Shown piece after piece: positions 11,485-38,378 of a stretch of 64,000 nucleotides of DNA. The stretch spans positions 37,262,001 to 37,326,000 of the forward strand of contig CM060734.1 in the NCBI GenBank assembly GCA_030704615.1, read 5' to 3'. This DNA is from Takakia lepidozioides (Eukaryota > Plantae > Bryophyta). The position numbers and the translations under genes were made by a program. Under the pieces are notes generated by a model. That model searched no databases. It saw nothing but the letters and a program-made list of their open reading frames with translations, and was not told the DNA's origin. Position 1 is the stretch's first letter. Every line of letters begins with the position of its first letter.

Positions 11485-14106
11485 TCACCAGTAATCCCCA
11501 CAAGAACAAATCCCATCTTCAAAGTGGTGAAAGCGGTTAGCGTCCCGTACAACAATTGCTCGGCCAACAATCTTTGAGATGAATTTGGTGGAGGTGTGGC
11601 AATCACCACACACTCGAAGATTCTTGATGAGACGGAGAGGCGTCCTAGGGGTCGTACTGATCAGCCCAAAACCAATGGCCAGCCTCTCACTGTGGTGGCA
11701 AAGAGAAAATTCCTTTTCCTCCTCCCCCACATCATGCAATACAAAGCGCGTGTCAGGCACATACCCCGCCTCCTTCATCTGCCCAGACAATCTTCTCAGC
11801 TCAGCATGGATTTCCTTAATTCTGGGATGCAACTTGTCATCTACAACGAAGGTGTGCACCCTGTTGCCAACCTCAATGCAGCAGCAACCTGGCTCCTTTC
11901 TAACCCCTTTGACCTTCATCATTCTTCTCACCTTTGCAGTATCATCCCACCTGCCAGCTGCAGCATAGATGTTTGAGAGCAACACATAAGTCGCAGCATC
12001 CTGTTCATCCCACATGAGGATAGATGTTGCTGCACGTTCAGCCATCTCCACATTGCCATGGATTCTGCAGGCACCAAGCAAGGCCTTCCACACCAGAGCA
12101 TCTGGATTGATGGGCATTTTATTAATCAGGTCCACTGCCTCATCCAGTTGTCCAGCACGTCCAAGAAGGTCCACCATGCAGCCAAAGTGCTTTAGTGTCG
12201 GAGTGACACCATGATCTTGACTCAGGGAATCGAAGTAGCGTCTTCCTTCATTCAGTAGGCCAGCATGGCTGCATGCAGAGAGAACACATATAAAGGTGAT
12301 GCTGTCCGGCTTCAAGCCGTTCTTTTGCATTCCTTCAAATAGTTGCACGACCTCCCTATGACAACCATGCTGTGCATATCCTGCGATCATCGCGTTCCAC
12401 GACACCACATTACGTTCAGCCATATTGTCAAACACTCCCTTTGCATCCTCGATGCACCCACATTTGGCATACATGTCCACCAGGGCAGTGTTCAGGATGA
12501 CATTTGGTACAATTCCAGCTCTGACGGCGTCGCCATGCACCTCTTTGCCCTTTTCCAGGGCTGCCAGGCTTGCACACGCACTGCAAACACACACAAACGT
12601 GATGTGGTCGGGCTTCACCCCTTCCCCCATCATTTGCTCATACGTCTCCAAAGCCTCCATCCCGCGCCCCTGCTGTGCATACCCTGCGAGCATCGCGTTC
12701 CACGACACCACATCTCGTTCAGCCATATTGTCAAACACTCCCTTTGCATCCTCGATGCTCCCACATTTGGCATACATGTCCACCAGGGCAGTGTTCAGGA
12801 TGACCTCGGGTACGATTCCAGCTCTGACGATGTCGCCATGCACCTCTTTGCCCTTTTCCAGGGCTGCCAGGCTTGCACACGCACTGCAAACGCACACAAA
12901 CGTGATGCGGTTGGGCTTCACCCCTTCCCCCATCATTTGCTCATAGGTCTCCAAAGCCTCCATCCCGCGCCCCTGCTGTGCATATCCTGCGAGCATCGCA
13001 CTCCACGACACCACATTTCGTTCAGCCATATTGTCGAAGACTCCCTTTGCATCCTCGATGCTCCCACATTTGGCATACATGTCCACCAGGGCAGTGTTCA
13101 GGATCACATCTGGTACGATTCCAGCTCTGACGATGTCGCCATGCACCTCTTTGCCCTTTTCCAGGGCTGCCAGGCTTGCACACGCATTGCAAACGGACAC
13201 AAATGTGATGCGGTTGGGCTTCACCCCTTCGTACATCATTTGCTCATACGTCTCCAAAGCCTCCATCCCACGCCCCTGCTGTGCATATCCTGCGAGCATC
13301 GCACTCCACGACACCACATTTCGTTCAGCCATATCGTCGAACACTCCCTTTGCATGCTCGATGCTCCCACATTTGGCATACATGTCCACCAGGGTATTGT
13401 TCAGGATCACATCTGGTACGATTCCAGCTCTGACGATGTCGCCATGCACCTCTTTGCCCTTTTCCAGGGCCGCCAGGCTTGCACACGCACTGCAAATGCA
13501 CACAAATGTGATGCGGTTGGGCTTCACCCCTTCCCCGATCATTTGCTCATAGGTCTCCAAAGCATTCCTACCACACCCATGCTTGGTAAATCCTGCCAAC
13601 ATTATATTCCACGTGGTCAAAGATCGTTGAGGCATTCTGTTGAACACTTGGTGAGCATCCATGATGCTCCCGCACTTAACATACATGTTGACAAGGGTGT
13701 TGAGGAGAAAAACATTTGGCATGAATCCACTTTGGATAATGTGAGTGTGCACCTGCTTTCCAGCTTCCAGGCCTTTCACCTTGATGCACTTATGCAAGAG
13801 ACAGACATACATTTCTGAATCTGCTGAAATGCCTCCTTGGTTTAAAGTCTGTAGAGCCTCTTTCAGTCTGCCTGCCTCACAAAGCATCTTCACATGCCCA
13901 GAAGTGCCAGAAGAGGCATTGTGGACTCCCTCTCTTGATCCTCTTCCAGAAGCTGTGGTCATGGTTGACGTGCCTGATTTTATCAACTGTGCCGCTGCAG
14001 CTGCTGCCTTTAGTTGACCATCTACCCATGAAGGTTTCTTGTAGCTATTGATCCACAGGGAATCATAGGTAATTTTGTGCTTGACATCTGGCCCTCTTGG
14101 ATGAAT
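11485..14106 (-). CDS. PLS-class PPR protein with E1-E2-DYW deaminase domain (organellar C-to-U RNA editing factor); last exon of a chimeric gene
   Basis: Uninterrupted ORF with P-L-S triplets, PG box (KEPGCCCIEV), HSERLA, CGDCH and terminal CSCGDYW. Confidence 0.95.
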   Translation of the reverse strand: MHPRGPDVKHKITYDSLWINSYKKPSWVDGQLKAAAAAAQLIKSGTSTMTTASGRGSREGVHNASSGTSGHVKMLCEAGRLKEALQTLNQGGISADSEMYVCLLHKCIKVKGLEAGKQVHTHIIQSGFMPNVFLLNTLVNMYVKCGSIMDAHQVFNRMPQRSLTTWNIMLAGFTKHGCGRNALETYEQMIGEGVKPNRITFVCICSACASLAALEKGKEVHGDIVRAGIVPDVILNNTLVDMYAKCGSIEHAKGVFDDMAERNVVSWSAMLAGYAQQGRGMEALETYEQMMYEGVKPNRITFVSVCNACASLAALEKGKEVHGDIVRAGIVPDVILNTALVDMYAKCGSIEDAKGVFDNMAERNVVSWSAMLAGYAQQGRGMEALETYEQMMGEGVKPNRITFVCVCSACASLAALEKGKEVHGDIVRAGIVPEVILNTALVDMYAKCGSIEDAKGVFDNMAERDVVSWNAMLAGYAQQGRGMEALETYEQMMGEGVKPDHITFVCVCSACASLAALEKGKEVHGDAVRAGIVPNVILNTALVDMYAKCGCIEDAKGVFDNMAERNVVSWNAMIAGYAQHGCHREVVQLFEGMQKNGLKPDSITFICVLSACSHAGLLNEGRRYFDSLSQDHGVTPTLKHFGCMVDLLGRAGQLDEAVDLINKMPINPDALVWKALLGACRIHGNVEMAERAATSILMWDEQDAATYVLLSNIYAAAGRWDDTAKVRRMMKVKGVRKEPGCCCIEVGNRVHTFVVDDKLHPRIKEIHAELRRLSGQMKEAGYVPDTRFVLHDVGEEEKEFSLCHHSERLAIGFGLISTTPRTPLRLIKNLRVCGDCHTSTKFISKIVGRAIVVRDANRFHHFEDGICSCGDYW
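12340..13560. repeat. Near-identical 303-bp tandem PPR triplet repeats (~4 copies)
   Basis: Repeated ccctttgcatcctcgatgctcccacatttggcatacatgtccaccaggg blocks every 303 bp. Confidence 0.9.
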
Positions 14107-15140
14107 CTGTACCCACACTCTACCCCTGCTCCTTCAGCTATCCATCTACCTCTGCACAAAGCATGCATTCATCCTTGCCTTGCTGCTAGCAGCTGACAAT
14201 GACAGCCTAGATTTGTTCTAGGAAACACCCAACTCAGCTTATCACACTAGTTCCTATGCTCATTCTCTCTGTAATCCAACAGGCATCCACCTTTTTGCCT
14301 CGATTGTCCCACCATTGACTGGGGTCAGAAAAGTATTCTTTCCACGGCTTCTCCTCGTCTCTGTTACCTGTTTCTGGATACTTTCCTGTTGTCACATTGG
14401 CAGTATCATGTCAAAGTCACTCCAAACTATCAAAGGTTCACTCAACCAGCTAACTTGCAGAATTCAACATGAAAATTTAGGGCCCGCTCTGATAAGAGGG
14501 AAGAACAGGGTGAAATGTGTTGAAGAAGGTGCCTTCATTGGCAGTGCCTGATTTTATCAATTGTGCCGCTGCTGCTGCGGCTTCCAGTTGACCATCTACC
14601 CATGCAGGTTTCTTGTAGCTATTGATCCACAGGGAATCATAGGTAATCTTGTGCTTGAAATCGAGCCCTCTTGGATGAATCTGGACCCACACTCCATCCC
14701 TGCTCCTTCAGCTATCCATGCCTCTGCACAAATCATGCATACATCCTTGCCTTGCTGCTAGCAACTGACAATGACAGCCTAGAATTCTTCCAGCAAACAC
14801 CCCAACCATACCTATCACACTAGTTCCTATGCTGACTTGCATCTGCTTCCAACAGGCATTCACCTTTTTGTCTCCATTGTCCCACCATTGACTGGTGTCG
14901 AAGAAGTGTTCATTCCAAAGCTTCTCCTCGTCTCTGTTATCTGTTTTTGGATACTTTCCTGCTGCCACATCGGCACTAACTTGTCAAATTCATTCCAAAC
15001 CACCACAGATCCACTGCAACATATGGCAAATAAAAGGCTACAACTTGGATGCAGACACCATATTCAATATGCAAATTCAGGACCGAGTCTGATGAGAGCG
15101 CAAAACAGGCTGAAATAGGTCGAAGAAGAAGGTGCCCTCA
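13970..15140. repeat. ~574-bp tandem duplication of a two-exon PDF-motif module
   Basis: ORFs starting at 14118 and 14692 are near-identical; exons and introns repeat with period 573-574. Confidence 0.9.
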
Positions 15141-22830: not shown

Positions 22831-23001
22831 CAGCTATAATTTCTTGAAAACCGGGACTCTCAGCTCTAACGGTCCCGATTTATTAAAAAATATTTAATAA
22901 ATCGGTACCGCCAAAGTTGGCGGTTCAGATTAATTAAATATTTTCTCAAAAATCGGGACTGCCAAAGCTAGTGGTTCCGATATAACTAGGGGGGGCTGAA
23001 T

Positions 23002-23253: not shown

Positions 23254-25910
23254 AAAAGAGGAATGTAACAATTTCCTTCTTGTTAGTCGAACTGAAATTT
23301 AGGCTTCACCGTGAGTGAGATCGTTCTATTTCTGGCATATGATGTTTCAATTGAACTGAACCACACTTGAATTTTCATGTTTCAGTGTGAAGAGTTCAAC
23401 GTACATCTTATGAGCGTAATCTCCAAGGAGGTAGTTAGCTAAAGAACGACAATCTAAATTTCTCTAATTCTAATCTCTCAATATATTCTCTCATTTCTAA
23501 TCTCTCTACTGTAATGGCTAGATTCTCGCTGCCTACCTTTTCGACATTTGGATGGACAGACGCTGGATGATGACCGTTGGAAAAGGGCTTGGATGAAACC
23601 AGCTGGAAACAATCTATTTTTAAACTAAGTATTGTCTTATATTAACAGCTAGCTTATCTCTAAGATAGAATGAGGTGGCGTCCTATCTGGACAGACACCC
23701 GGATGGAATCCAAACAACCAATCAGGGCTTGCCACTTGGTGGGATGAGATTGTGGGCCTTTGTTTATAAAAGAGATCAGCACGACGCTGAAGGCGGCGGT
23801 ATACGTTTGGTGTGAAAACCCTAGTATACCTCTGTGTAAGGTTTGGATGAAGAAAGTGTGAGTGATGATGCACTGCTAACCCATGTGAATGATTCTGACT
23901 CCTCTCCGTTGGATCCTGCCTATCTCGCTAGCCTGCTTTACTGAGCACACATCCCCGTGATAGCTCAATACCCATAGAGAAAGAGGAATAACGGGGTGGG
24001 CGAGAATGTTGGTGGAGAAGGGGTTGCAGAATTTCGTTAATCATTAGCTGCACATTCCTTCTTTGTACATCAGGTAGCTGACACTGTTGTCATGGCGGCG
24101 CTTTACTGTTTCAGTTCTCGCTCGTGTTTTTGCTTGCTCCTAGTTTTCATAGTATCTGCTTACGTTTTTGTAACTTGCGGTAATGGCCTTGTCTTCTAAT
24201 CCTCCAACTGATGCTAAGCTTAACGCGTACAAAGAAACTCCCGCTGGTCATTTTGAGTCAATTTTTGCCAACATCGTGCATGCTTCGGTGGATCCTAGCC
24301 TGGTGGTTGTATTTGATTATCCGCCTCTTGGAGGAGACCCCCGTCGCTTCTTCTCTGCCATCTGAATTGCATAGTCCTCTGCAATGTCAAAAGAGTTCGC
24401 TGAAGAAGCTGGATGAAAAACTGCATAATTCATCCACCATTTCATCCATCCCTCATCCCACCATTTTCCTATTCCTCATTCCACAAAACACGCTCCCTAC
24501 ACTATAGTAAATGATTTGGTGGGTCCACTATTGGTTCCTCCACCTTCCTAAAGTGCATTTTAAGACCTGGTGCCAACGGAAATGATCTCATCTCTCACTC
24601 CAAACCCCCTTCTACCCCTCCCAAAAGCAATGGACTTCTCGTCTTCTTTTCGTGAGCAAGGGTATGGGCCAAGTGGCCGATTCCCTATTTGACTACCTAT
24701 GACATATCAAAAAGATGGTCCCATGTGGCTTGGGCCAGCTTGGGCCGTGTGGGTTAACGCCTTATCTAACGGCTGTGGCAGCAGCCTGCGCTTGTGCTAT
24801 AGCCATTGCATGGCTATTGCCATGCTCCTCCTCTTTTGGCGCCTCATTTAAGGTCAAACCATCATGATAGGCATGATATCTTGCATGGTATCTAGAAACA
24901 CGTCATGGCTAAATCCAATGGGGTTAGCCTATCTAGCCCACACATTAGTTATGGTCCTCCTTAGCTTATATAACCTTGGGAGGCCATATATGACTAGTTC
25001 TTAGGCCTATAAATTAATTTGGGCAACAAATTAGATTATAAGCTTAAAAAAAACACAAAAGACAAGGTTGTTAGCTCTTCTACCTTCCCTCTTCCTTATA
25101 GAGGGGGTGATGCTTTACAAACGATACTCTTGAAGAGCAAAGGTGGTGAGCTTAGTAACAACTAAACCTCACTCAACCATTTTGCTTCACAAAAAAAAAA
25201 AAAACAACAACAAAGGAAAGTTTTCAACCAAACTATGCAAGCATCTACTCAAAGACTCATTGGTTAGCTTCGTGGACATCGCAAACCCTTCCATTTGTAG
25301 GCCATACCAGTAGTTGTGTTAACCCTTAAGCGCCCAGTGCCCAATGTTGACTTTTTGAAAAAAATGGACCCCAACTCAGAAAAATGAGAATATCTCAGCG
25401 CAAAAAAAGTTTTTGGGAAAATTGACCAGGCATTATGCTCATACCTACCCCTTCCAGACACCTGTAAATTTCCAGGCCAATTAGGCGAAAATCAGAGAAA
25501 CGTCACCGTTGAGTGTGGGGCCCATTTTTTGGGCCCCTCCCAAAACAATAAGGGAAATTGGAGGAATTTGCAATTTTCAATGACGGGATGAAATCTGCAG
25601 GACCTCATCCTGCTTACAGGTGTTGTCCAGCACATTGGCATTCTGATGAGCCATGGAATGCAAAAAATGGATTCATATTTTCTGATTTACAACTGGTCAA
25701 AGTAAGGGGGGTCAAAATGCCATAGGCAACAGTAGTTTTGCTGAAGCACAAAGACAGCTGGCATGTGCACATCAGCTTCCACCTGCTCTCATTCTTTTGC
25801 CCAAGTTCCACACAAGCCTAAGGCACACAAAATGGAGTCTAGCAACATGAAGACAAAGGCCAGAATCAAGCACAGCAGCCAACTACTTCATCTCCCATCC
25901 ATAGTGGGAG

Positions 25911-26285
25911 AGCATGGGTGGGATTTGAACCCACAGAGCTGCCCCAGCTGGCAGCCCATGCTGAAGGCTTTTGGCCAAGTTCCACACAATCTGCACACTC
26001 TGAAAGTTTAGAGACAATGAGGCAACCACACAAGCTTGAAGGCCAGCAAAATTCCAACACAATGAGGCAACATACAAACCTGAACACAGATAATTCCATT
26101 GTGTGAGTGGGAATTGAACCCAGTGGCCTGCCCCAACTGGCAGCTCACACAAAGAAAGACCAACATGTGGCCAGCACTAGCATCAAATCAGACTCAGAAA
26201 AACGAGAGATGAATCCACCTTTACACGCCCAATTGTGTGAGTGGGAGTTGAACCCACTAACTTGCCCCAATTGGCAACTCACACA
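25911..26285 (-). ncRNA. Three 52-nt tRNA-like (acceptor + D + T arm) structures at 25911-25962, 26100-26151 and 26234-26285
   Basis: 7-bp acceptor stems, D-like loops AGCTGG/AGTTGG/AATTGG, T loops TTCAAAT/TTCAATT/TTCAACT; compensatory substitutions between copies. Confidence 0.7.
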
Positions 26286-26777
26286 TGAACACAAGGGGGG
26301 AGACTCCTCCCCAGTAGGGAGGGAAGGAGTCTCCACCCTTGTGCGCACCCCCGCTTGATTGGGGGACTACCACATAATTATACTAGACACAAAGAAAATG
26401 GACTCAGTCCTAATTGAAACACAAAATTGTTGCAGCAAAGACCTCGGAGCTACATGAACACTAAGGCAAAAAGCTGGAGTAGCAAACAAACCATTCAGAT
26501 CAGGACTTAGTGAACCCCAATACTGCACAACCACAAAATCATACCTCTCCTTGGACTGTCAAGCGACTCTCTACGGCTGGATTCTCAGTACAAATGTTTC
26601 ATGGCTACCAACAACAAACCAACCCCCAAACACACCACTATGTTTAGAAAAAGACAGAACACCACTACATAGAAAAAGTGCCGTAAGGAGGATACCCCCT
26701 CTTTGGCATCAAAGGTCTCCACGTCTCTGCAGTAAGAAATCAACCGTATCAATTACTGAACATAGAAGTATCTATAA

Positions 26778-28932
26778 TCAGAGAAGGCTATGGCTCTTGA
26801 CAAAGCATCGTCCAAGGCACATATAGACATCTCCACACGCGTGACAAAAATACCTTTGACGCATACCGCACTGAACACACTTCCTCCTCCTACTAGTCTT
26901 GAGGGAGAAATGCACGGACCCCGGGTTGGGCACATCTGCCCCTGGCATTACTGTTCTCCTGGGAGGAACCCACCCCACAATTAGTCCCTTTGCAACCTCC
27001 AAATTGAAAAGCATGTGGCTAAGAGGAATGTGGCCCTTTCCCCTCATAAAACCCAGGTACAATATGTAAGCATTCACCAAAGAAGTGTCAACTCCATGAA
27101 AGTACAAGCGGTGCCACCATTTATGGTCCCTGGTCTGAACAGAGTAGTAACCCCGTAGCTGATCCTGAACATCCCCGCATATGCTGCTAGTAATGAACCA
27201 CAATAGGGGAGGTAGGCACAGCACGTCTTGCCCTTTTGTGCCATCTTTGTATGAAGCAATTAGGACCGACAGGGGAAATGGCAGTGGAAATCATGGTCAC
27301 CAACTTGGCATCCATCCAGGCAATAGCGGCTACTTCGCCACTTATGTGAACACGATATTCCAGCCTACCTCTCTCACCCTTCTTCCCCAAATCAAGGCAC
27401 GTAGGAAAGCCCACTTGGGAGGTTTTTACCGTGCCAGTAGCATAGATCTGTTTTGCTGCCAAATCATAGAACAGGATGGGGCTACTGAAAAAATTATCCA
27501 TCGTTACAATATGGCCCTTACCCTCAAATCCTTCTAGTAACCTTGTGACCACGCCATATCCACTGCCATGGGTCATATCATTCCCATCATCCTTCCCAAG
27601 GTAAACCTCTAACTTCTGAACATATTTGGAACATGCACCACACAAACACCACACCTTCAGACCCCACTTCACAGGCTTCTTGCTCAGGTATTGCTGGATT
27701 CGGGCATTTTTGCCCTTGTACTTCACCATTCGCTCATCCACAGTCAAATTCTGCTCGGGGCTCATGTAGGTGGTATACAAACCATTTAGTGCATCTAGCA
27801 ACCACCTCGTTTTAGCTAACTTATCAAAAGCAGGGTCAGTGTCAATAGTGCATACATCCCTGTTGTCAACAAGGTGGAGGCACCTCAGAATTGCCTCCCA
27901 TCGGTTGCGGGACATAATGCGCATGATGGAAGGGCAATTGAAGAAGACATTGTTGGCTTTCCAATACAATCTAGTACTAGGCAATTTTTTGATTCCCATG
28001 AGCATGTGAACAGCAAGCCAAGCCTTCAATTCACGGATGGTGATAGGGTACCACCATCTACCTCATTTCAGGTTTCCATTCTGGTTTTATGTCCTGGCAT
28101 ACAAGTTGGTCATGCTGCAAATTCGGTGCATGACCGACAGTGGCCAAAACAAATTGAAAAAGTCAACTGGATTTACTGAATCTCCAAAAGGCAAACAAGG
28201 ATCTGAATCCCCACCTAACCATGTAATGTCTGGCAATTCAGTAGTAGAGGAGTTCTACATGTCATCACCAAACAACTCAGCAGGACCCCACTGCTCCCAA
28301 TTGGGCGGCAAATCATATAATCCCACCTCACGCGTTGGACTCCCCGTGTCCACACAGTAGTCCATCAAGTCAGGATTGTCGATGTCAACAAGGTCATCGT
28401 CTTCTGGATTATAGTCACAATCAGAATCTGATTCACTATCATCTACTTCCCCCTCAGGCAATTCAGCTTCAGAATCCAACCCCAAGAGCTCAGGGATAGT
28501 GCACAACATTGAATCATCAAGATTACACACAACACATGACTGTGACGATACCACATGAACACCAAGGACACCAAAAAAAGAGACAGTATAATTCTCTGTA
28601 CCATTCAGGATGTCCCATGTCTTGTCTACCACAGTGCCATATCCAAATTCGTGGGCATTGCTAGACGATGCCACATCCTGAAGGTGCAGCTCAGCCACTG
28701 CCATCTTCACTGTGGATCCCAAAATCCCTATGTCATCCATAGTTTGGGAGTGACCAGCAGGATCACATATAGGATTTTGAGAGTTGCGCAAGGAGTAGGC
28801 CGAATTGCCTATCTCCTCACTCATGAAATCAAAAGAGGGTTCAATACGATTACCTCTCTCCTGGCCAGCTGTTTGAGCCTCATCGTGGCTGGCAGAAGAC
28901 GTCTGGAAGTTAGGCCAAACCTCGAGCCTCAA
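26778..28932 (-). pseudogene. piggyBac (PGBD4-like) transposase, frameshifted
   Basis: Acidic N-terminus; DDD triad LTVDERM, TMDNFFSS, DVQDQL; KKPVKWGLKVW; C-terminal Cys-rich domain CVQC..CHAC..C..C..H; stop at 27187 plus frameshifts. Confidence 0.88.
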
Positions 28933-31900
28933 AATGTCGTTTACCTCTGCGCTGAACCCAAGGGGGTCTCATTCCTCCTTGCGATCTACCCAACCCAAAA
29001 TCTCTGCGCAATGGCGCCTAAACAACTAACGAAAGTTGGAGGGCTATGGAAATCCAGGCCAACGCACACGAGCAGTTCTCTTCAAACACAAGAGGTAGTC
29101 CTCATTCAGGCACCCGACAATCCGCTCGACTTGCTCGGTTGATGCGCCCAGTGAGCGTGCCCACTTGGCAATCGATGCAGCTTGAGTCTCCAAATGCGCA
29201 GGTGCAGGAGGAGACAATACACCCGAACCCATGTTATACTATGTAGCTTCAACCTTCCTCCATCAATTTGCCTATGCACACAAGGATAAACACAAGGATG
29301 AGCTACACGATGCCCTAACTGCGCACAGTCTAGCTCAGGTATCAAACAATGAACACTGCCTTGAATGCGCACCCTGAGTATCAATGCAATGTCGGCCCAT
29401 CATCTCTCACAGCTACGGCTCAATCTCTGGCACTTGCCCACAATTTCCAAGTTTCCTCGACTGAAAGAGAAAGAGATAATGGAAGATGTAAATCGGAGCA
29501 AACCACCAACGACAACCTGTCAAGGCATCTGCAACGGCAACCTGCAACAAAGTATGGAACATGTGCGAACGCCACAACAGACGAGATCACAGCACAAGGC
29601 AAAGCGCGAGAAGGAGAGAGACGACACTCAAAACGTGGGAGCAAGCAAAAATCGCTGCAGAAGCAGATCCCACCTCCTGCGTAGCCAAAAATTGTAATCC
29701 TAACAAAAAAAAAAAAAAAACCTATTCGCGCGTTGGAATCCTGACTGCCATGTGGCTGGCATCCTACCCTCCAAAAATCAGGTTAATCGGTTAAAATCCG
29801 AGAAAATTAGAGCCGAAAAACCAAAACGTTCGGCCGAAAACGGGTCGAATGGGTGCTTAGGGGTTAATGTTTCGTCATTTCTGTAACAAATGGTCATGAT
29901 TCTGCACTATCTACGTACAACTTGACTCTCCTGGACTCAAAAACTCTCAAACAAAAATCATTGTGTTAATTTATGCACCTACAGACTGCCAGTTTTTTAT
30001 GGCACAAATGAGACTGCCAATTCATTCAATAAAAAAAATAGGACCGCGAGCTTTGGTGGTCCCGAATCTAATAAAAAATATATATGTATAATAATTTTAG
30101 AAAATGAGATCGTCAACTCTGGCGGTCACGAATTTATTTTAAAAATAATTAATTAAAAAAATATTTGAGATTGCCAACTCTGACGGTCTCCCATTATCAA
30201 GCTAATTAATTATGATAGCTGAAATGGTATTTTTAATGTTTGTTTTGTCACGTGCTGCATTTTTTTAGCTTATATGAAGATATATATAAGATATTATATA
30301 TATATATATATATATATATTTAAAGCTTACTTATTTCTTTTTTTTTAAATAGAAAATTGACGTGACGCTGACGTACGTGAGTGTCTGATCTGATGTGACC
30401 TGACGTCACGTTAGTGTGCAACCTTGGTCCATAACAGGGCCACACTGTCCTAGTTTTGGTCATTGGAAAACTATACAAGTCGGTTGAACTTATTATGGAT
30501 CAAGGTATAAGTCTATGTATACCCTCTTTCGGATTGATTCCCAAATTGAGTAATGATAGTTAAACATTTGATACCTCTTTACTTCTAGCTGCTCAATATG
30601 ATCCAAGTGTTGGGCTTTCGTGAGATTTTCATATCGCTCTGAGATCAACATTTCTTTGACAAGCCATTTTGAATACAAGAGCAACTTTCCTCGATCAAGA
30701 ACCGAATCTCCATTGAATTTCGTCAGAGAAACTCTCTAAACATATTGTGAATTTTGATTCAGTTGGGAATTCTTATTACGTCATACTATTTGTAATTTAT
30801 GCTCCGGAATATGTTTGCTTAAATCACCATATCTGAGAGCAATCTTATTGTTTCGCTGACTAATCCAGTTTTGAAGTGAGGCCAGTTCAAAGGCACAGCC
30901 GACGATCGCTGATGAAGTTCTTCACAAGTAGGAAGAGAGAATAGTGAATAGTGGAGGCGTCCATGAGGATATTCTCTCCGGTATATTTCATTGATGACAT
31001 TGTTTTATATTGATTCTTCTTAATTTTGTAGGCCGTGATATCCATGTGATTAACTTATGATATTCTACGAAATGCCTAGTAGGTTTGCCGGAGATATCTT
31101 GGTTTTTAATAGTATATTATAGAGGCCGTGCTCTCTTTTCATTTTTTTCGCTGGCGAATCGCTTTGCATTGTCACATTATCCATGTATTTTTCATTCTCC
31201 GGCAATACCCGTAGCAACATCATATTTTCTCGACTGATTTATTTCATTAGTGACACCCATTGTTTGCCTCATTATATTAAATTGTTCAATTATTGTTTGG
31301 TATTTGTGTATTTTGGATGATGTTGGTTATTGTGACTTTATTTTTTCCCTAATGTGTTATTCTTTTGATACTAATTTAGCTGTAAATATTGAAACTTGGA
31401 TCTTATAGATATACATTAGGGATGCCTATTCTCTTGTAGGAACCCTATTTCTATCATTCGGAGCTGTGGGCACATATATATTCATGTTCTACCAACCTCT
31501 GAAAATAATCAGTTGAACACTTACATGTAGTCCATGTCATTTTATAGAGCCAACTTTCTTAAGGGGTAGTAGCTGCAATATGAAGTGACTTAATTTAATT
31601 CAATTTAACGAATTTTGGATTTTTAAACCTAAATTCGGACAAAATTTAATATAATTTAAATTAATTATAAGTATTATAAAGCAATAAATCAATTATCTGT
31701 GTGAAATTACATAATGTTGACATCAAAACTGAATGATATAGTGGATAATGCATAAAATATTAATAAGCAGTGTTTTTTTTTCTGGCGAAAAATCACCAAA
31801 TTTCGATCTGAAAACACATCAGCTACTTGTACAAAAGAATTACGGGAGGTAAAATCTGATTTTTCCGCCAAAAAGCAGCGACTGATAAATTTCAGGGGCC

Positions 31901-34164
31901 TAATCTTGCCGACGTGGACCACTTAAAATGTGCCACCTGGAGTACAACTATTTTTTAACTTTGTCACCTTGATATTCTCGCCATATGGCCCCACCAACGA
32001 TTTTGAAAAACAAAACACTGTTAATAAGCACAAATATCAATGAAATAACAATGTGCAAGAAAAACAAATGTACATAGAACCTCTACAAACTTGTTTTCCT
32101 CCTTCTGTGGTCTCCGATATTTTGTTCAATTATTTTTACTTTGGGATTTTTCTCGTTTTTGTGTCTCACGCTTCATATAATTTCTCGAAAGTCCCAAAGT
32201 ACTCACACATTAGCATAGTTATCAACGAGAGCGACGTCGGAATACATTAGGTCACGTCGGACTTGATGTTGATGCGACCCGCATCACGTCAATTTTAGGT
32301 CATATAATGTGTCACATTTTTCATCCCTCTAAAAATTACATGCAAATTAATTTTAATTTTAATAAAAAAAATTGGACAAGTATTTGGTGATTGCAAGGCC
32401 GTTGCCGTAGCTCAACAGTCGCCCAACTGTCGTCATTGCCTAGCGGTCACCTCAACCAAAAAACATAAGCATAACAAAAAAACAAAATAAAAACAAGCGA
32501 CTATCACGAAAAAGTTATATAAGGCGAGTAAAGAGAGAGGGTTAACAGCCCGAGACCCCGTTGGCCACTACAGTGCCAAACAGTAGCGAAAGTGATTACA
32601 ACAACCATCTACCAAGAAAAAAAAACAAAAAAAACAATTACAACGTGCCATTACAACTTTTCAACTAACACAACATGACAACTTCAAAAATTATTATCTA
32701 AGGATCTTAGGCTCTGATTCTACTGATTTCAGATTCTATTGGGAGTATTAGCTTTATTCTCTGCTATCAACAAGAACTAGCATAGAAGGATGCTAAGAAA
32801 AATATTCTAGAACAGATCAATTTTGCTCGTATCTAATCTAATCTATGATCAGCTGTAGGGTAACCACACTATGACTACATTACAAACCAACCGTATTGCG
32901 ACATAGGATTTTTTTTTTATAGCTCATAACTACATTAATCCAACTATGAATTAAAACAAGCATTCAAGAGATGGTCTGCATAATTCTGCAACATGTAAGT
33001 TCAGCGATAATAATAAGGCTAAGGTATAAGGGACGTTTAGTGTGCTTCTAGTCGGCCTACCAGTCACCTAGAAAAAACTTGGTGGTCAGTTGTAATAAGG
33101 CACTTGGGCCGATTCCGTCCCTTCTTGAAAACAAATAAAACCTATATAATGAGGCACACTGCTGATAATAAGCCCATACGCGTTACTATGATAAAATATA
33201 ATTATATTTCGAAGATGATACTTCAATGTATTTCCTTTCAAAAGGTTATCCAAAACCTTCGAAAAAAAATGAAACGGTTGTAAAAACAAATCTAAATGTA
33301 ATCAATCGGTGAAGTATGATTATATTCTGAAAGGTTGTACTTAAAGGTGTTATCTCATGGATGGATAGTAAACCGCATCATTGATTATTATTACAGTGGT
33401 GTAACCCTAGTTTGGACGTGACGCGATGCACGTTTGGACATGTATTATAGGGTACGCTTCAAGACGTCAATGTTATGGCTATGAGCGGCCCCTCTCACAA
33501 TGTAGCCCTATAAATCAATTTATGAGATATATCAAAAAATTTCAAAAACTTTTATTTTCTCTTGGAGCATCATAATGCATTTGACCATCTTCCACTCATT
33601 TTTTTGCTATGGTTATTTCATAAGAATTGTAGCTTTAAACATTCCCTAGGGCATTGCACAATGATTTAGAGGTTTTTGTGAGGAAATGAACTGCTTCATA
33701 ATTTGTCATGAAGAGGGTTAGTTTAATATAGATTTTGGAAAAATCTTGAAAATACTGTAACATCCACATATGGGCAAAGGGATTCTAGGAGACACTAAAG
33801 AATGTTACCAGTGTCATTTTGGTGAAGAAATGAGAGAGTTTGGAGCTGTCTATGATGAGACGTGGACCGCCATGAAAGCTGCAAGAGAAGTAGCTTGAAG
33901 ACATGAATCTCACACATTCCATGTGCTAGATGACGGATCACCCATCGTCGGGTAGTCTGCCAAGGTACATTTTGAAAATGTGGCTGCATTGGCAACTGAG
34001 GCTCATACACCTGACAATATCGCGTTTTGTTTTCGAACTTGCACTAATGGCGGCCCTAACATTATGTTCTGTCGATGGTCTTTTTCACTTTGAGTGAATG
34101 ATTTGCGGTTAATACTTGATGAAACAATCTTTAAGACCAAATTATAATGCCCATTAAAAAATCC

Positions 34165-34495
34165 GCATTGCCACTATCGTCCGACGGTTGATCAGCGGTC
34201 GCCCCACCATTGCCTGTCGCGCGACGGTTGTCCCACCGTCACTCATGCTTCGGCGATCGTCCGCCCGTTGCCCAAAAAATATATATATTAAAATCAGTAT
34301 AGTCACCATCGCCCGACGGTCGCCCCACCACCGCGCGTCGCAAAAGAGGAAAAAAAAAAAGAAAAAAAAAAGGAAAAAAACGACATAGTCTCGGCGGTCT
34401 GTCGGTGGTCGCCGCCCATCACCCCGTCGTCGCTCAACCATCGCCCAACGGTCTTCATTGTCCGACTGTCGTTCGGTTGTTGTCATGACGGTCTA
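34165..34495. repeat. GC-rich degenerate short-unit repeat (tcgcccgacggtcgccccaccatcg-like) interleaved with A-tracts
   Basis: Repeated units visible; related piece at ~32400-32450. Confidence 0.5.
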
Positions 34496-36999
34496 ACATA
34501 AAAAAAAAACGAAAAAAACATGTAGGCTGCTATCTTGTCAATGGAGTAAATATAGTGATATAAAAATTTAAAAAAAAAAATCCTTAATCTAAGTCAGTTC
34601 TGGACTTGACATGATGCGACATCCGATGTGATGCTGACGTATTTGCACCATGTCACGTCATAATTGACAATCGAACACATTAGATGTCCAATTTACCCAA
34701 TGACATCCCCTTTCTATGGGTGGACTATAATGGGTGACATCCAATAGTATATACTTTTTTACTTTGAACCCACCACCACATATAATTGAGTCTTGTATCT
34801 TAACCACCATAGCATATGTTGAATGTTTTTTAAATGCGATATAATTGAACTATTTGTGACCTACAAACCTCTCAATTAAGTAGCTTGGCGGTTTTTCTAA
34901 CTCCCTTTGTCTCTCTCCCTACATCAAGCTTTATATCTTAAATAATTGATATATTATGTAATATATATTTGACATATATATCTTTTGAGTTCATCCCTAA
35001 AAAATATTTGTCATTAGCTGCAAAAATACGTCACAAATTTACGAGCAACTTTGAGATTATACATATATCAAATGGAAGAGGAAAATATGAATATTATTAA
35101 GTTTTATTTTAATATTGTCATGATCCATGCAATGCTGTCAACAATATTTTATGAAGCGATATCATGTCTGTCCTCACCATAAGTATGATTTGTTTTTAAA
35201 GGTTGTATTAAAAAATAGATAAGAGAAGAATACCCAATTAGTTTTGAAATAGTAATTTATAATTTGAAACAATTCCAAAAGTAGCATTCTCTTGAATATA
35301 ATTCTTTGAATGTTTTAAACAACATCACCTTGAGGACGCAGTTTTCATAATAATAATAATAATAATAATAACATATTAGTATCTATACATATTGATTATT
35401 TTTATTGAAATTCCTTAATGTAAAATATTAAAATACGTCAAGTATTGAATTAGACCATGATAAACATATATGAAATCATGCCAAAGGAAAACAACATGCT
35501 CAATACTCACTTTATAATAGAATGTGATTGACAATATGAAAATGTCAACTCTAAGATACAACTTTAATCTTCAGTAAATATTAGACATGAAGAGATGCGG
35601 CATGGTATTGTTTTTACATTATTACATTCCAATTAGATTTGGCATGATAAATTTTAGCTCTAAAGCTAAATTTTCTTAAATGCAGGTTGAGATTAAACAA
35701 TCCACACAAAAACTTGCATCCATTAATTTGTATGACCTAGTATCTTCAACTTTCAGCATGTGGAAAAAAAATGATTTTAGTGGTAACATATTTCAATTAT
35801 CATCACTTGAAATGAACTGGTCCGATAGTACCTCTTCAAATAAGTAGCATGATGTAGACATATCTAAAAGCTGAATGTTCTAAAATAATTTGCATGATTT
35901 TGAATATACATATACACTATGTAATATGAGCTCTTGTGATGGTTGAACCAATTTGTACTTACAAATTGGAACAACATAATTATATTAATGGGAACATTTT
36001 AATAGGTCTAATAGAGCATATACCTTGCTTTTTGTCCTCTTTTTGTGGAAGATATCCAACAATGGCACATCCCTAAATAATAATCAGCCCAAACACTTCT
36101 ATGATTTGGTTTTAGTTTTACCAAAAAGTTCTTTCACCAACTTTGTGGGTTTTCTCCCCTCTCATATTTATATTCACGAGTAAAATCTTATAGACATTAG
36201 CTTGTAATTAGTGCAGAAATAACATCTTACTGTATGTACTAGTTCATTTTTTAATACTTTTAGTAATTTATCGAGTTGCGCCTCTATGGATTTTTGGATA
36301 ACGAGTTATTTTTCCTGTCTTAATTTGAAGTAAAAGGGCCTCTGTCCCCTTTAAAATAATAACAGATATAATAATAACTTACAACAAACCAATGTTATAG
36401 TGACCATATGGCATGGTCTACGATGATATGGTATAAGATTGATATGTCATAGATTATAATAGACACTTTGTTTTTCCTCTTTCATTTTACAAATTCTAAT
36501 TAATTAATTTTTTCTACATGTAAATAAAGTCTATGAGAACTTAGTCATTAAATATAATGTAATATTATATACGTTTATTATTTTAAGCCATTTATAATAT
36601 GAATATGTTTGAACCATTTCCAATTGGTCTCTGTTCCTAATTGAGATTGCATTGTATTATGATCTAGGAGAGAAGAATGAATTATCTTGGCACAATGAGT
36701 GCTATAACAGAGTACTATTGAGTAATGTTTCCACCGCTGACAAGCAAATATAAAAACTTCAATTGGAATCACTATGCATTGTTTTTAAAATATGTTTAGG
36801 CATTTTTATACATCAAAATTCAAAGAATATTTGAGTATTGGTGACCTATGAAGAACACATGTAACATTAATCCTATACAATGCTATGGTATGTATTGGTT
36901 ATTTGGTAAAACATTTTTGTGACACAACAAGTGTAGATCACTTGTTGATCATCATGTGATGGAAGAAAAGTGAAGTATTTTTTCTCCTCTATAAGAGAG

Positions 37000-38378
37000 A
37001 TGGGTTTGGATTATTATCGTATTTTGAAGGTTGGCAAAGGGGCACGTGATGATGATTTCAAAAAGGCTTATCGAAAATTGGCAATGAAATGGCATCCCGA
37101 TAAAAACCCCAAAGACAAAAAGTCGGCAGAGGCCAAATTCAAAGAAATTTCTGAGTCTTTTGAGGTGTGAGTGTGATCAATATTCTCATTTCATTGGAAT
37201 AAACGGTAAACTAAACATACTCAAACTATGTGTACCTCTCTCCTGATTCCGATCTCTTTAAGTTTATTTTAGAATCAAGTTGGTTTGATCACATGAATAG
37301 TGATTCTCCTCCCTTACATATCTTCCCTAATATGTTATAGGTGTTAACTGATCCTCATATGCGAGCCATTTATGATCAATATGGAGAAGAAGGATTGAAA
37401 GGAAATGTCCCAAACCCAGGTTCGGGAACGCGAGGCTTTTCCAATGGCGGATCAACAAACATGTTTCAATTCAAACCCCGAAAAGCACAAGACATATTTG
37501 CCGAATTTTTTGGTGGTGCATGCCCATTTTCTGGCATGGGAGGCATGGCTTGCATGGATAGTCGGGACGTAGATACCCCAAAGGATGATGCCATGTTGGG
37601 TGGTTTTGGTAGGGCAGGCAATATATTCCGTTCATTCGGAGGAGCTGGACATCATGCTCATGGACCTCCCAAAGCACCACCAATCGAGACCAAGTTGAGA
37701 TGCACTCTTGAGGAATTGTACAATGGGTGCATAAGAAAGATGAAGATTTCAAGAAATATTGCTGATCCGAGTGACCCAAAAAACGGGTATTTTCATTAAT
37801 TTTCCACGTAGTACAATAATTTAATTTTGCCCACTTCCTCTATGCTTACCATTCATTTAGTTGAATGTAATTGAGCTGGTTGAGCTCATTGATGTAGCTA
37901 GTACAATAATTATAAATGGGTTTTTAATTGATTTGTGAGCAGGAAGACATTTCCAATCGAAGAGATCCTCACATTGGAGGTGAAACCTGGTTGGAAGAAA
38001 GGCACAAAGATTTTTTTCCCTAATAAGGGCAACGAACATCCCGGAATGTCGCCTGCGGATTTAGTGTTTATTATAGACGAACGTCCACACGAAACTTACA
38101 AACGTGATGGGAATGACTTGATTGCAATTGTAAAGATATCTCTTAGTGAAGCTCTCATAGGTTCTACGGCCACGTTGAACACTCTTGATGGAAGGGTATT
38201 AAACATTCCTTGCTTTGAGATTATCTATCCTGGATATGAAAAACATGTTCAAAAAGAGGGTATGCCAATTCAAAAGGAGCCTGGGAAGAGAGGAGACCTC
38301 CACCTCGAGTTTGATATCAAGTTTCCACTGAAGTTGACAAATGATCAGAAGACAGGTGTCAAAAAACTTTTTGGATGA
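37000..38378 (+). CDS. Class B (type II) DnaJ/Hsp40, 3 exons (37000-37164, 37341-37786, 37943-38378)
   Basis: J-domain with WHPDKN, G/F-rich linker, C-terminal domain ([20 protein letters not shown]); GT-AG junctions in frame. Confidence 0.93.

Follow-up and report, generated by a model that had tools for sequence, protein, structure and literature searches.

Anticodon-less tRNA-like units downstream of the transposase in a piggyBac element of Takakia lepidozioides, with counterparts in a second lineage

A piggyBac element and its surroundings

The 64-kb stretch of Takakia lepidozioides DNA analyzed here (the window, in what follows) contains a 4.5-kb element bounded by two inverted ends, each consisting of TTAA and CCCYTAAGCRCCC. 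These are short terminal inverted repeats starting CCC, as piggyBac requires; the end pattern TTAACCCYTAAGCRCCC has two matches in the window, inverted to each other, with none expected. Inside the element are a broken transposase gene and, past its end on the same strand, three 52-nt units (U3, U2, and U1) with tRNA-like folds. The features are listed in 5' to 3' order along the minus strand, with one neighboring gene:

29851-29867, minus strand: piggyBac 5' end, TTAA (29864-29867) plus a 13-nt terminal inverted repeat (29851-29863)
28255-28932, minus strand: upstream ORF of 225 aa, directly 5' of the transposase; no Pfam match
26778-28240, minus strand: piggyBac transposase, broken; ORFs 27187-28029 and 26778-27224, with more stops upstream
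26290-26343, minus strand: long GC-rich hairpin, 23-nt arms, 8-nt loop, 91% complementary
26285-26234, minus strand: unit U3 (5'-most), 52 nt, acceptor TGTGTGA/TCACACA, D stem TTGCC/GGCAA; 79.8 bits
26151-26100, minus strand: unit U2 (middle), 52 nt, acceptor TGTGTGA/TCACACA, C-C at the first T-stem pair; 78.3 bits
25968-25989, minus strand: 22-nt leader motif just 5' of U1; second copy at 25794-25815, 95% identical
25962-25911, minus strand: unit U1 (3'-most), 52 nt, anticodon-less and tRNA-like, acceptor AGCATGG/CCATGCT; 77.8 bits
25892-25910, minus strand: small hairpin beginning right after U1, 6-7 bp stem, 7-nt loop (from a fold of 25885-25965)
25319-25335, minus strand: piggyBac 3' end, TTAA duplication (25319-25322) plus a 13-nt terminal inverted repeat (25323-25335)
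11485-14118, minus strand: PPR-E-DYW gene, intron-less, 877 aa, PLS-type PPR, E motif, DYW deaminase domain

The larger transposase ORF (27187-28029) matches the Pfam domain DDE_Tnp_1_7 (PF13843, E = 2.8e-58), which places it in the piggyBac superfamily. The reading frame is interrupted by several stops and one frameshift, and its Cys-rich C-terminus stops at 26778. This copy of the element is consequently dead, its transposase being broken. The 225-aa ORF is possibly an accessory gene of the element. All three units are co-oriented with the transposase, i.e., they lie on its sense strand, within the element, past the transposase stop (26778) and short of the 3' end (25323), much as a preliminary description had placed them. 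The array starts 490 nt past the end of the transposase, the units span the region from 490 to 870 nt after it, and 576 nt separate the end of the last unit from the 3' inverted repeat.

Several other features of the window were noted. The presence of the intron-less PPR-E-DYW gene (11485-14118) marks the host as a land plant; the encoded protein has a weak match to Transpos_assoc near its N-terminus (E = 4e-10). A near-perfect palindrome at 22862-22969, with 53-nt arms that are 81% complementary across a 2-nt gap, gives weak matches, all below threshold, to several models of plant MIR precursors (the best at 36 bits, vs. a gathering score of 95) and looks like a foldback of the MITE type. In the region right next to the element's 5' end, from 30001 to 38000, GC content is 0.33-0.36, vs. 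0.43-0.52 elsewhere in the window. Finally, the motif TTNGTSTTCATGT has six matches in the 64 kb (1.06 expected), four of them on the sense strand of the piggyBac element (25845-25857, 26283-26295, 26452-26464, and 28553-28565, all on the minus strand). The copy at 26283-26295 overlaps the start of U3, and TTCATG-type motifs also border the unit in one of the public contigs discussed below (L007); the motif may be a protein-binding or processing site.

Anatomy of the units

From its 5' end, each unit comprises a 7-bp acceptor stem, one unpaired base, a 5-bp D-like stem, and a 6-nt loop ending in GG; then come a 4-nt linker replacing the anticodon arm, a 5-bp T stem, and a 7-nt loop, TTCAANT. 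The acceptor and T stems thus add up to a 12-bp stack, and the T loop has a purine at the place of tRNA base 57. The preliminary description had reported three minus-strand units of exactly 52 nt with identical folds, in which the GG of the D loop and a TTCRA T loop are kept and 4 nt stand in for the anticodon arm. Coordinates, lengths, and the folds of the single units all proved correct, and parsing of the units bore out the loops and the linker. Folded singly, the units have free energies of -20.3, -22.0, and -27.1 kcal/mol (z = -2.3, -1.7, and -2.7, respectively).

A covariance model built from the three units scores them at 78-80 bits on the minus strand and at 16-25 bits on the plus strand. 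The T-arm motif GGGTTCAANTCCCAC has three matches in the 64 kb, with 0.04 expected, and all three are the units themselves. Neither the covariance model, run with filters off, nor the motif scan found any further copy in the window. By the usual tools these are not tRNA genes: ARAGORN finds none in the window, and the Rfam tRNA model has no match there, the only hits being T-arm-sized tmRNA fragments. No Rfam family reaches threshold with the window units or with those of the public loci described below. When the three window sequences were read for it, no CCA was found to be encoded 3' of the units.

Just upstream of the array is the long GC-rich hairpin (-46.8 kcal/mol, z = -5.7), whose stability was equaled by none of 200 shuffled sequences. 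It ends 4 nt (UUCA) 5' of U3, and so abuts the first predicted RNase P site.

Within the array, the stems differ from unit to unit in a compensated way. Five pairs, four of the acceptor stem and one of the D stem, are altered on both sides; none is altered on one side only, and a single pair is broken (C-C, pair 29-45 of U2). Overall, 98% of the cells in the stem alignment hold a pair, vs. 26-61% when the partners are slid. The spacers between units (82 and 137 nt) have only short motifs in common. Both observations agree with the preliminary description, according to which acceptor and D-like stems differ among units yet stay paired, and spacers are diverged. A decayed fourth unit was considered at about 25735-25786, after the second copy of the leader motif, but found no support: its alignment to U1 is near random and its fold is not significant.

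The units share with tRNA-derived SINEs a tRNA-related sequence with a B box in repeated DNA. Unlike SINEs, they have no anticodon arm, body, tail, target duplications of their own, or dispersed copies in the window, and they are fixed in position and orientation inside a DNA transposon. Insertion of SINE heads, each with its own target duplication, had been named in the preliminary description as the explanation that would count against it. In the flanks of the window units there are no target duplications and no A or simple-repeat tails, and the copy scan of the 64 kb found nothing outside the element; the SINE-head explanation was rejected.

Counterparts in a second lineage

The public collections searched contained no close copies of the window piggyBac family; the best transposase matches are 42-53% identical. 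Thirteen public contigs encoding transposase relatives were examined. Five of these (L007 and L013-L016), with transposases about 50% identical to that of the window, have one unit of 50-52 nt each, just past the transposase. In a transposase tree the window sequence and these five fall in one 13-row clade (SH-aLRT 98). The unit of L007, on the same strand as the transposase and about 80 nt past its end, was weakly positive with the covariance model of the window units (14 bits, E = 0.006). This model is sequence-specific and proved too narrow, missing L013, L014, and L015; a decayed homologue is found in L016, and a BLAST search from this recovered the homologous stretch in the other three.

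The second-lineage unit has the same general plan as the first, with a 12-bp acceptor/T stack (6 + 6), a 4-bp D-like stem, a loop containing GG, a linker of 2-3 nt, and the T loop TTCAAYT. A descriptor with the T loop and geometry fixed and the stem sequences free matched the three window units, the units of L007, L013, L014, and L015, and one further site in L012, a bacterial locus, which is a piece of a real bacterial tRNA; on shuffled sequence it gave 0.27 matches per 128.6 kb. Searches with the exact pattern of the unit core yielded two matches in metagenome contigs, both without the fold by the covariance model, one bacterial match (in prokaryote genome contigs), and none in viral contigs.

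The tRNA-mimic module is not universal in the clade: L010 and L004 have no unit in the 500-730 nt available beyond their transposases. Nor is the array general, since L013-L015 have a single unit only, despite at least 500 nt of sequence beyond the transposase. The second-lineage (family-B) units are AT-rich, and the tRNA-like fold is not their minimum-energy fold in context.

In the second lineage, no hairpin was found on the 5' side of the unit. The place that the GC-rich hairpin has in the window is taken by a conserved G run (GGGGGG, 1-3 nt, GGG), immediately before the unit and where RNase P is predicted to cut (L007 2107-2132, L013 1257-1272, L016 3931-3946). On the other side of the unit, L013 (1325-1900), L014, and L016 have a T17 run at +11, followed by several diverged repeat copies ending ...TGCAAGCATCTACATATGT...GTGTGGGTAAAATTTCACCC, which are probably subterminal repeats of that element.

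Covariation across the two lineages was assessed with seven distinct units (from the window and four public loci) and the 11 pairs that the two designs share. This is a small set in which some rows are close kin, and the cross-lineage alignment rests on equal length and design, not on sequence identity; within these bounds, 94.8% of stem cells hold a pair, vs. 32-47% with partners slid, 10 of the 11 pairs are altered on both sides (in 27 cells), and the covariation score is reached by none of 500 shuffles. A G-C pair closes the T loop in six of the seven units. At four positions in the stems there are U·G wobbles, for which the opposite strand would have A·C mismatches; the wobbles fit the transposase sense strand only, so that a unit RNA would be read on this strand.

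The sequences of the window and family-B units cannot be aligned to one another; from their shared design, length, and position we infer that they are homologous. Structure, length, strand, and position after the transposase have evidently been kept while the stems were rewritten, which points to selection, at the level of the transposon, on a sense-strand RNA. These comparisons of sequence support the main proposal of the preliminary description, that of a DNA transposon under selection to keep tRNA mimics: a second lineage has them in the same place and on the same strand, with rewritten yet paired stems and the same kind of T loop. The term "mascRNA-like" used there is valid as an analogy only (see below).

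A rival explanation is that the units are an inert relic, a fragment of a tRNA or tRNA-derived SINE that an ancestral element captured once, that was tandemly duplicated, and that has no function, or, in a variant of this idea, palindromic stems serving as DNA sites for the transposase. Many transposons contain tandem repeats in internal and subterminal positions, other short motifs are also repeated in the 3' region of the window element, the window copy is dead, and some relatives have no unit. We nevertheless consider a relic quite unlikely. Neutral decay would break stems, yet 10 of 11 pairs are doubly changed and 95% of cells remain paired among elements whose transposases are about 50% identical; unit length has been held at 50-52 nt, whereas the spacers have become unalignable. 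Target duplications and tails are lacking around the single units, and the 64 kb contain no copy beyond the borders of the piggyBac element. Use of the stems as DNA sites would leave both the tRNA-type loops and the sense-strand wobbles unexplained.

Possible processing of the element's transcript

If the units act as RNA, the enzymes most readily suggested by their anatomy are those that mature tRNA ends. The requirements of a plant nuclear protein-only RNase P are known from work on Arabidopsis PRORP3 (PMC4797305). Loss of the anticodon domain is the one tRNA truncation that this enzyme cuts like the wild type, with a kreact of 1.48 vs. 1.72 per min and a KM of 1.7 vs. 1.5 nM for the wild type; loss of the D domain hurts cleavage, and the combined length of acceptor and T stems sets the cut site (PMC4797305). 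The units have the anatomy of a minimal PRORP substrate as defined there: a 12-bp acceptor/T stack, a 7-nt T loop, a purine at 57, and a D domain. They keep everything PRORP3 uses and encode no CCA, and processing by RNase P and RNase Z is favored for these reasons. That the units form a conserved, transposon-encoded tRNA-mimic RNA module cut by PRORP and RNase Z is a reading of the sequences to which we would give an even chance of being right.

As we picture it, the array would most likely be part of the element's own Pol II transcript, in which the units would be recognized as pre-tRNAs. The predicted PRORP site in each unit is the first base of the acceptor stem, and the predicted RNase Z site lies after the base that follows the 3' end of this stem. 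For the window copy, the first cut would yield a transposase RNA whose 3' end consists of the very stable hairpin and 4 nt more (UUCA). Further cuts would release three tRNA-like RNAs of about 52 nt, to which CCA might be added, together with spacer RNAs of about 82 nt and about 137 nt. The element might benefit by forming 3' ends independently of poly(A), by being uncoupled from read-through, or by producing small RNAs. Transcription through the array, the cleavages, and any such benefit are inferred. There are points against processing as well. Given its broken transposase, the window copy need not be expressed. An mRNA that lacks poly(A) and has a plain hairpin at its end is not known to be translated efficiently, and in plants, silencing can be set off by RNAs that are not polyadenylated.

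A more far-reaching version is that this plant piggyBac lineage has built a natural tRNA-spacer cassette that imitates the minimal substrate of the host enzymes trimming tRNAs, giving the transposase RNA a hairpin-capped, poly(A)-independent end and releasing small RNAs that serve the element. The small RNAs would be the tRNA-like units, the hairpin, and the spacers, and might for example act in evading or tuning silencing. From what the sequences suggest, we regard this as conceivable, if rather doubtful.

The main rival to processing of a longer transcript is transcription by Pol III. Each unit could be a small Pol III gene, whose short tRNA-like transcript would afterwards be trimmed, or a site for TFIIIC, which by itself could act as a barrier in chromatin and hold the end of the transposon open. 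The T arm is close to a B box: in every unit, 10 of the 11 positions of GGTTCAANTCC agree with the consensus (GGTTCGANTCC). Past the units of L013-L016, runs of T (up to T17) begin after 11-21 nt, as would fit Pol III termination; and independent units in an array would need no common transcript. The A box is a poorer fit. Only the AGYTGG half of the consensus TRGCNNAGTGG is matched, its 5' half being unmatched, and the distance from A to B box is some 20 nt shorter than in tRNA genes. The first runs of four or more T in the window come 32, 49, and 79 nt after the units, which is background (one per 86 nt), and in L007 at +66. What lies 5' of the first unit is a GC-rich hairpin, not an upstream region of the tRNA type. 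Binding of TFIIIC alone would leave the compensated acceptor and D stems and the U·G wobbles unexplained. On balance we consider Pol III transcription or TFIIIC binding unlikely.

The same structural evidence that speaks for processing could also be claimed for a tRNA-like fold that works uncut, or cut on one side only, as a 3'-terminal shield replacing poly(A) or as a tag for transport or mobility. Tail structures of this kind, tRNA-like and 3'-terminal, occur in plant RNA viruses, and dicistronic tRNA-mRNA transcripts and tRNA-like mobility signals have reportedly been found in plants. As far as can be told from its title, the paper on dicistronic transcripts ties them to vascular plants (10.1101/2020.04.13.039131). 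Moreover, RNase P should cleave a design with acceptor, T, and D parts all present on the 5' side (PMC4797305), and this would detach the unit from the coding part of the RNA. A role for the uncut fold thus appears very unlikely.

Processing by RNase P and RNase Z would have parallels in several known systems. Among them are mascRNA and MEN-beta RNA of the MALAT1 and NEAT1 transcripts, in which RNase P makes the protected upstream 3' end of a Pol II transcript and RNase Z frees a tRNA-like RNA. They resemble the window element in having a tRNA-like fold with a hairpin or other structure upstream, to the extent that a transcript of the window array may be assumed. As an analogy, the label "mascRNA-like" in the preliminary description is apt; membership is another matter. 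The Rfam mascRNA-menRNA model (RF01684) gives the best Rfam match, on U1, with 21.7 bits, E = 0.94, vs. a gathering score of 42.5, while U2 and U3 were not listed and the public-locus units gave no match. A reduced anticodon stem is kept in mascRNA, where the piggyBac units have 2-4 nt. The MALAT1-type upstream protector is a triple helix of U-rich and A-rich strands; no such element was found upstream of U3, where the window has a plain GC-rich hairpin with neither internal loops rich in U nor a tract rich in A. Also unlike mascRNA, the window units are arrayed, are carried by a DNA transposon with a coding gene, and have a plant as host.

Plant genome editing makes use of synthetic polycistronic tRNA-guide RNA arrays, in which tRNAs alternate with spacers and RNase P and RNase Z release each spacer with exact ends. 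Those arrays are engineered and use full tRNAs, whereas that of the window would be natural, with minimal, anticodon-less units. Among natural systems, the t-elements of plant mitochondria, folds of acceptor stem and T arm, are described as setting 5' and 3' ends of mRNAs via RNase P and RNase Z (PMC1920247). The t-elements are organellar and sit beside host genes; the window units are in a nuclear-type, TTAA-flanked piggyBac near a nuclear-type PPR-DYW gene. The TMERs of murine gammaherpesvirus 68 (MHV68) are another case of a parasitic genome with tRNA-like folds joined to hairpins, reportedly split by the host tRNase Z (PMC4838037, PMC3534370). TMERs are Pol III genes with their hairpins after the tRNA-like part, whereas the window hairpin comes before the first unit. 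By analogy, the window module would work like mascRNA, t-elements, TMERs, and tRNA-guide arrays while being a member of none of these groups.

The preliminary description knew of no account of such units in piggyBac, and our full-text literature searches found no description of tRNA mimics in any DNA transposon. Few other settings are known to have processing signals of the tRNA-like type, namely two lncRNAs of mammals, mitochondrial mRNAs of plants, one herpesvirus, and, among engineered constructs, guide-RNA arrays. If the processing explanation is correct, the piggyBac described here would be the first cut-and-paste element to exploit the tRNA-maturation machinery, with mimics kept through deep divergence. 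The units would then be available as a natural processing signal for plants, very compact at 52 nt, with which several RNAs could be expressed in multiplex, and because piggyBac is a widely used gene-transfer tool, accessory RNA modules of its natural relatives are of practical interest. For the biology of the elements themselves, it would raise the testable question of what influence transposons have on their own transcripts, be it on the 3' ends, the stability, or the silencing of these.
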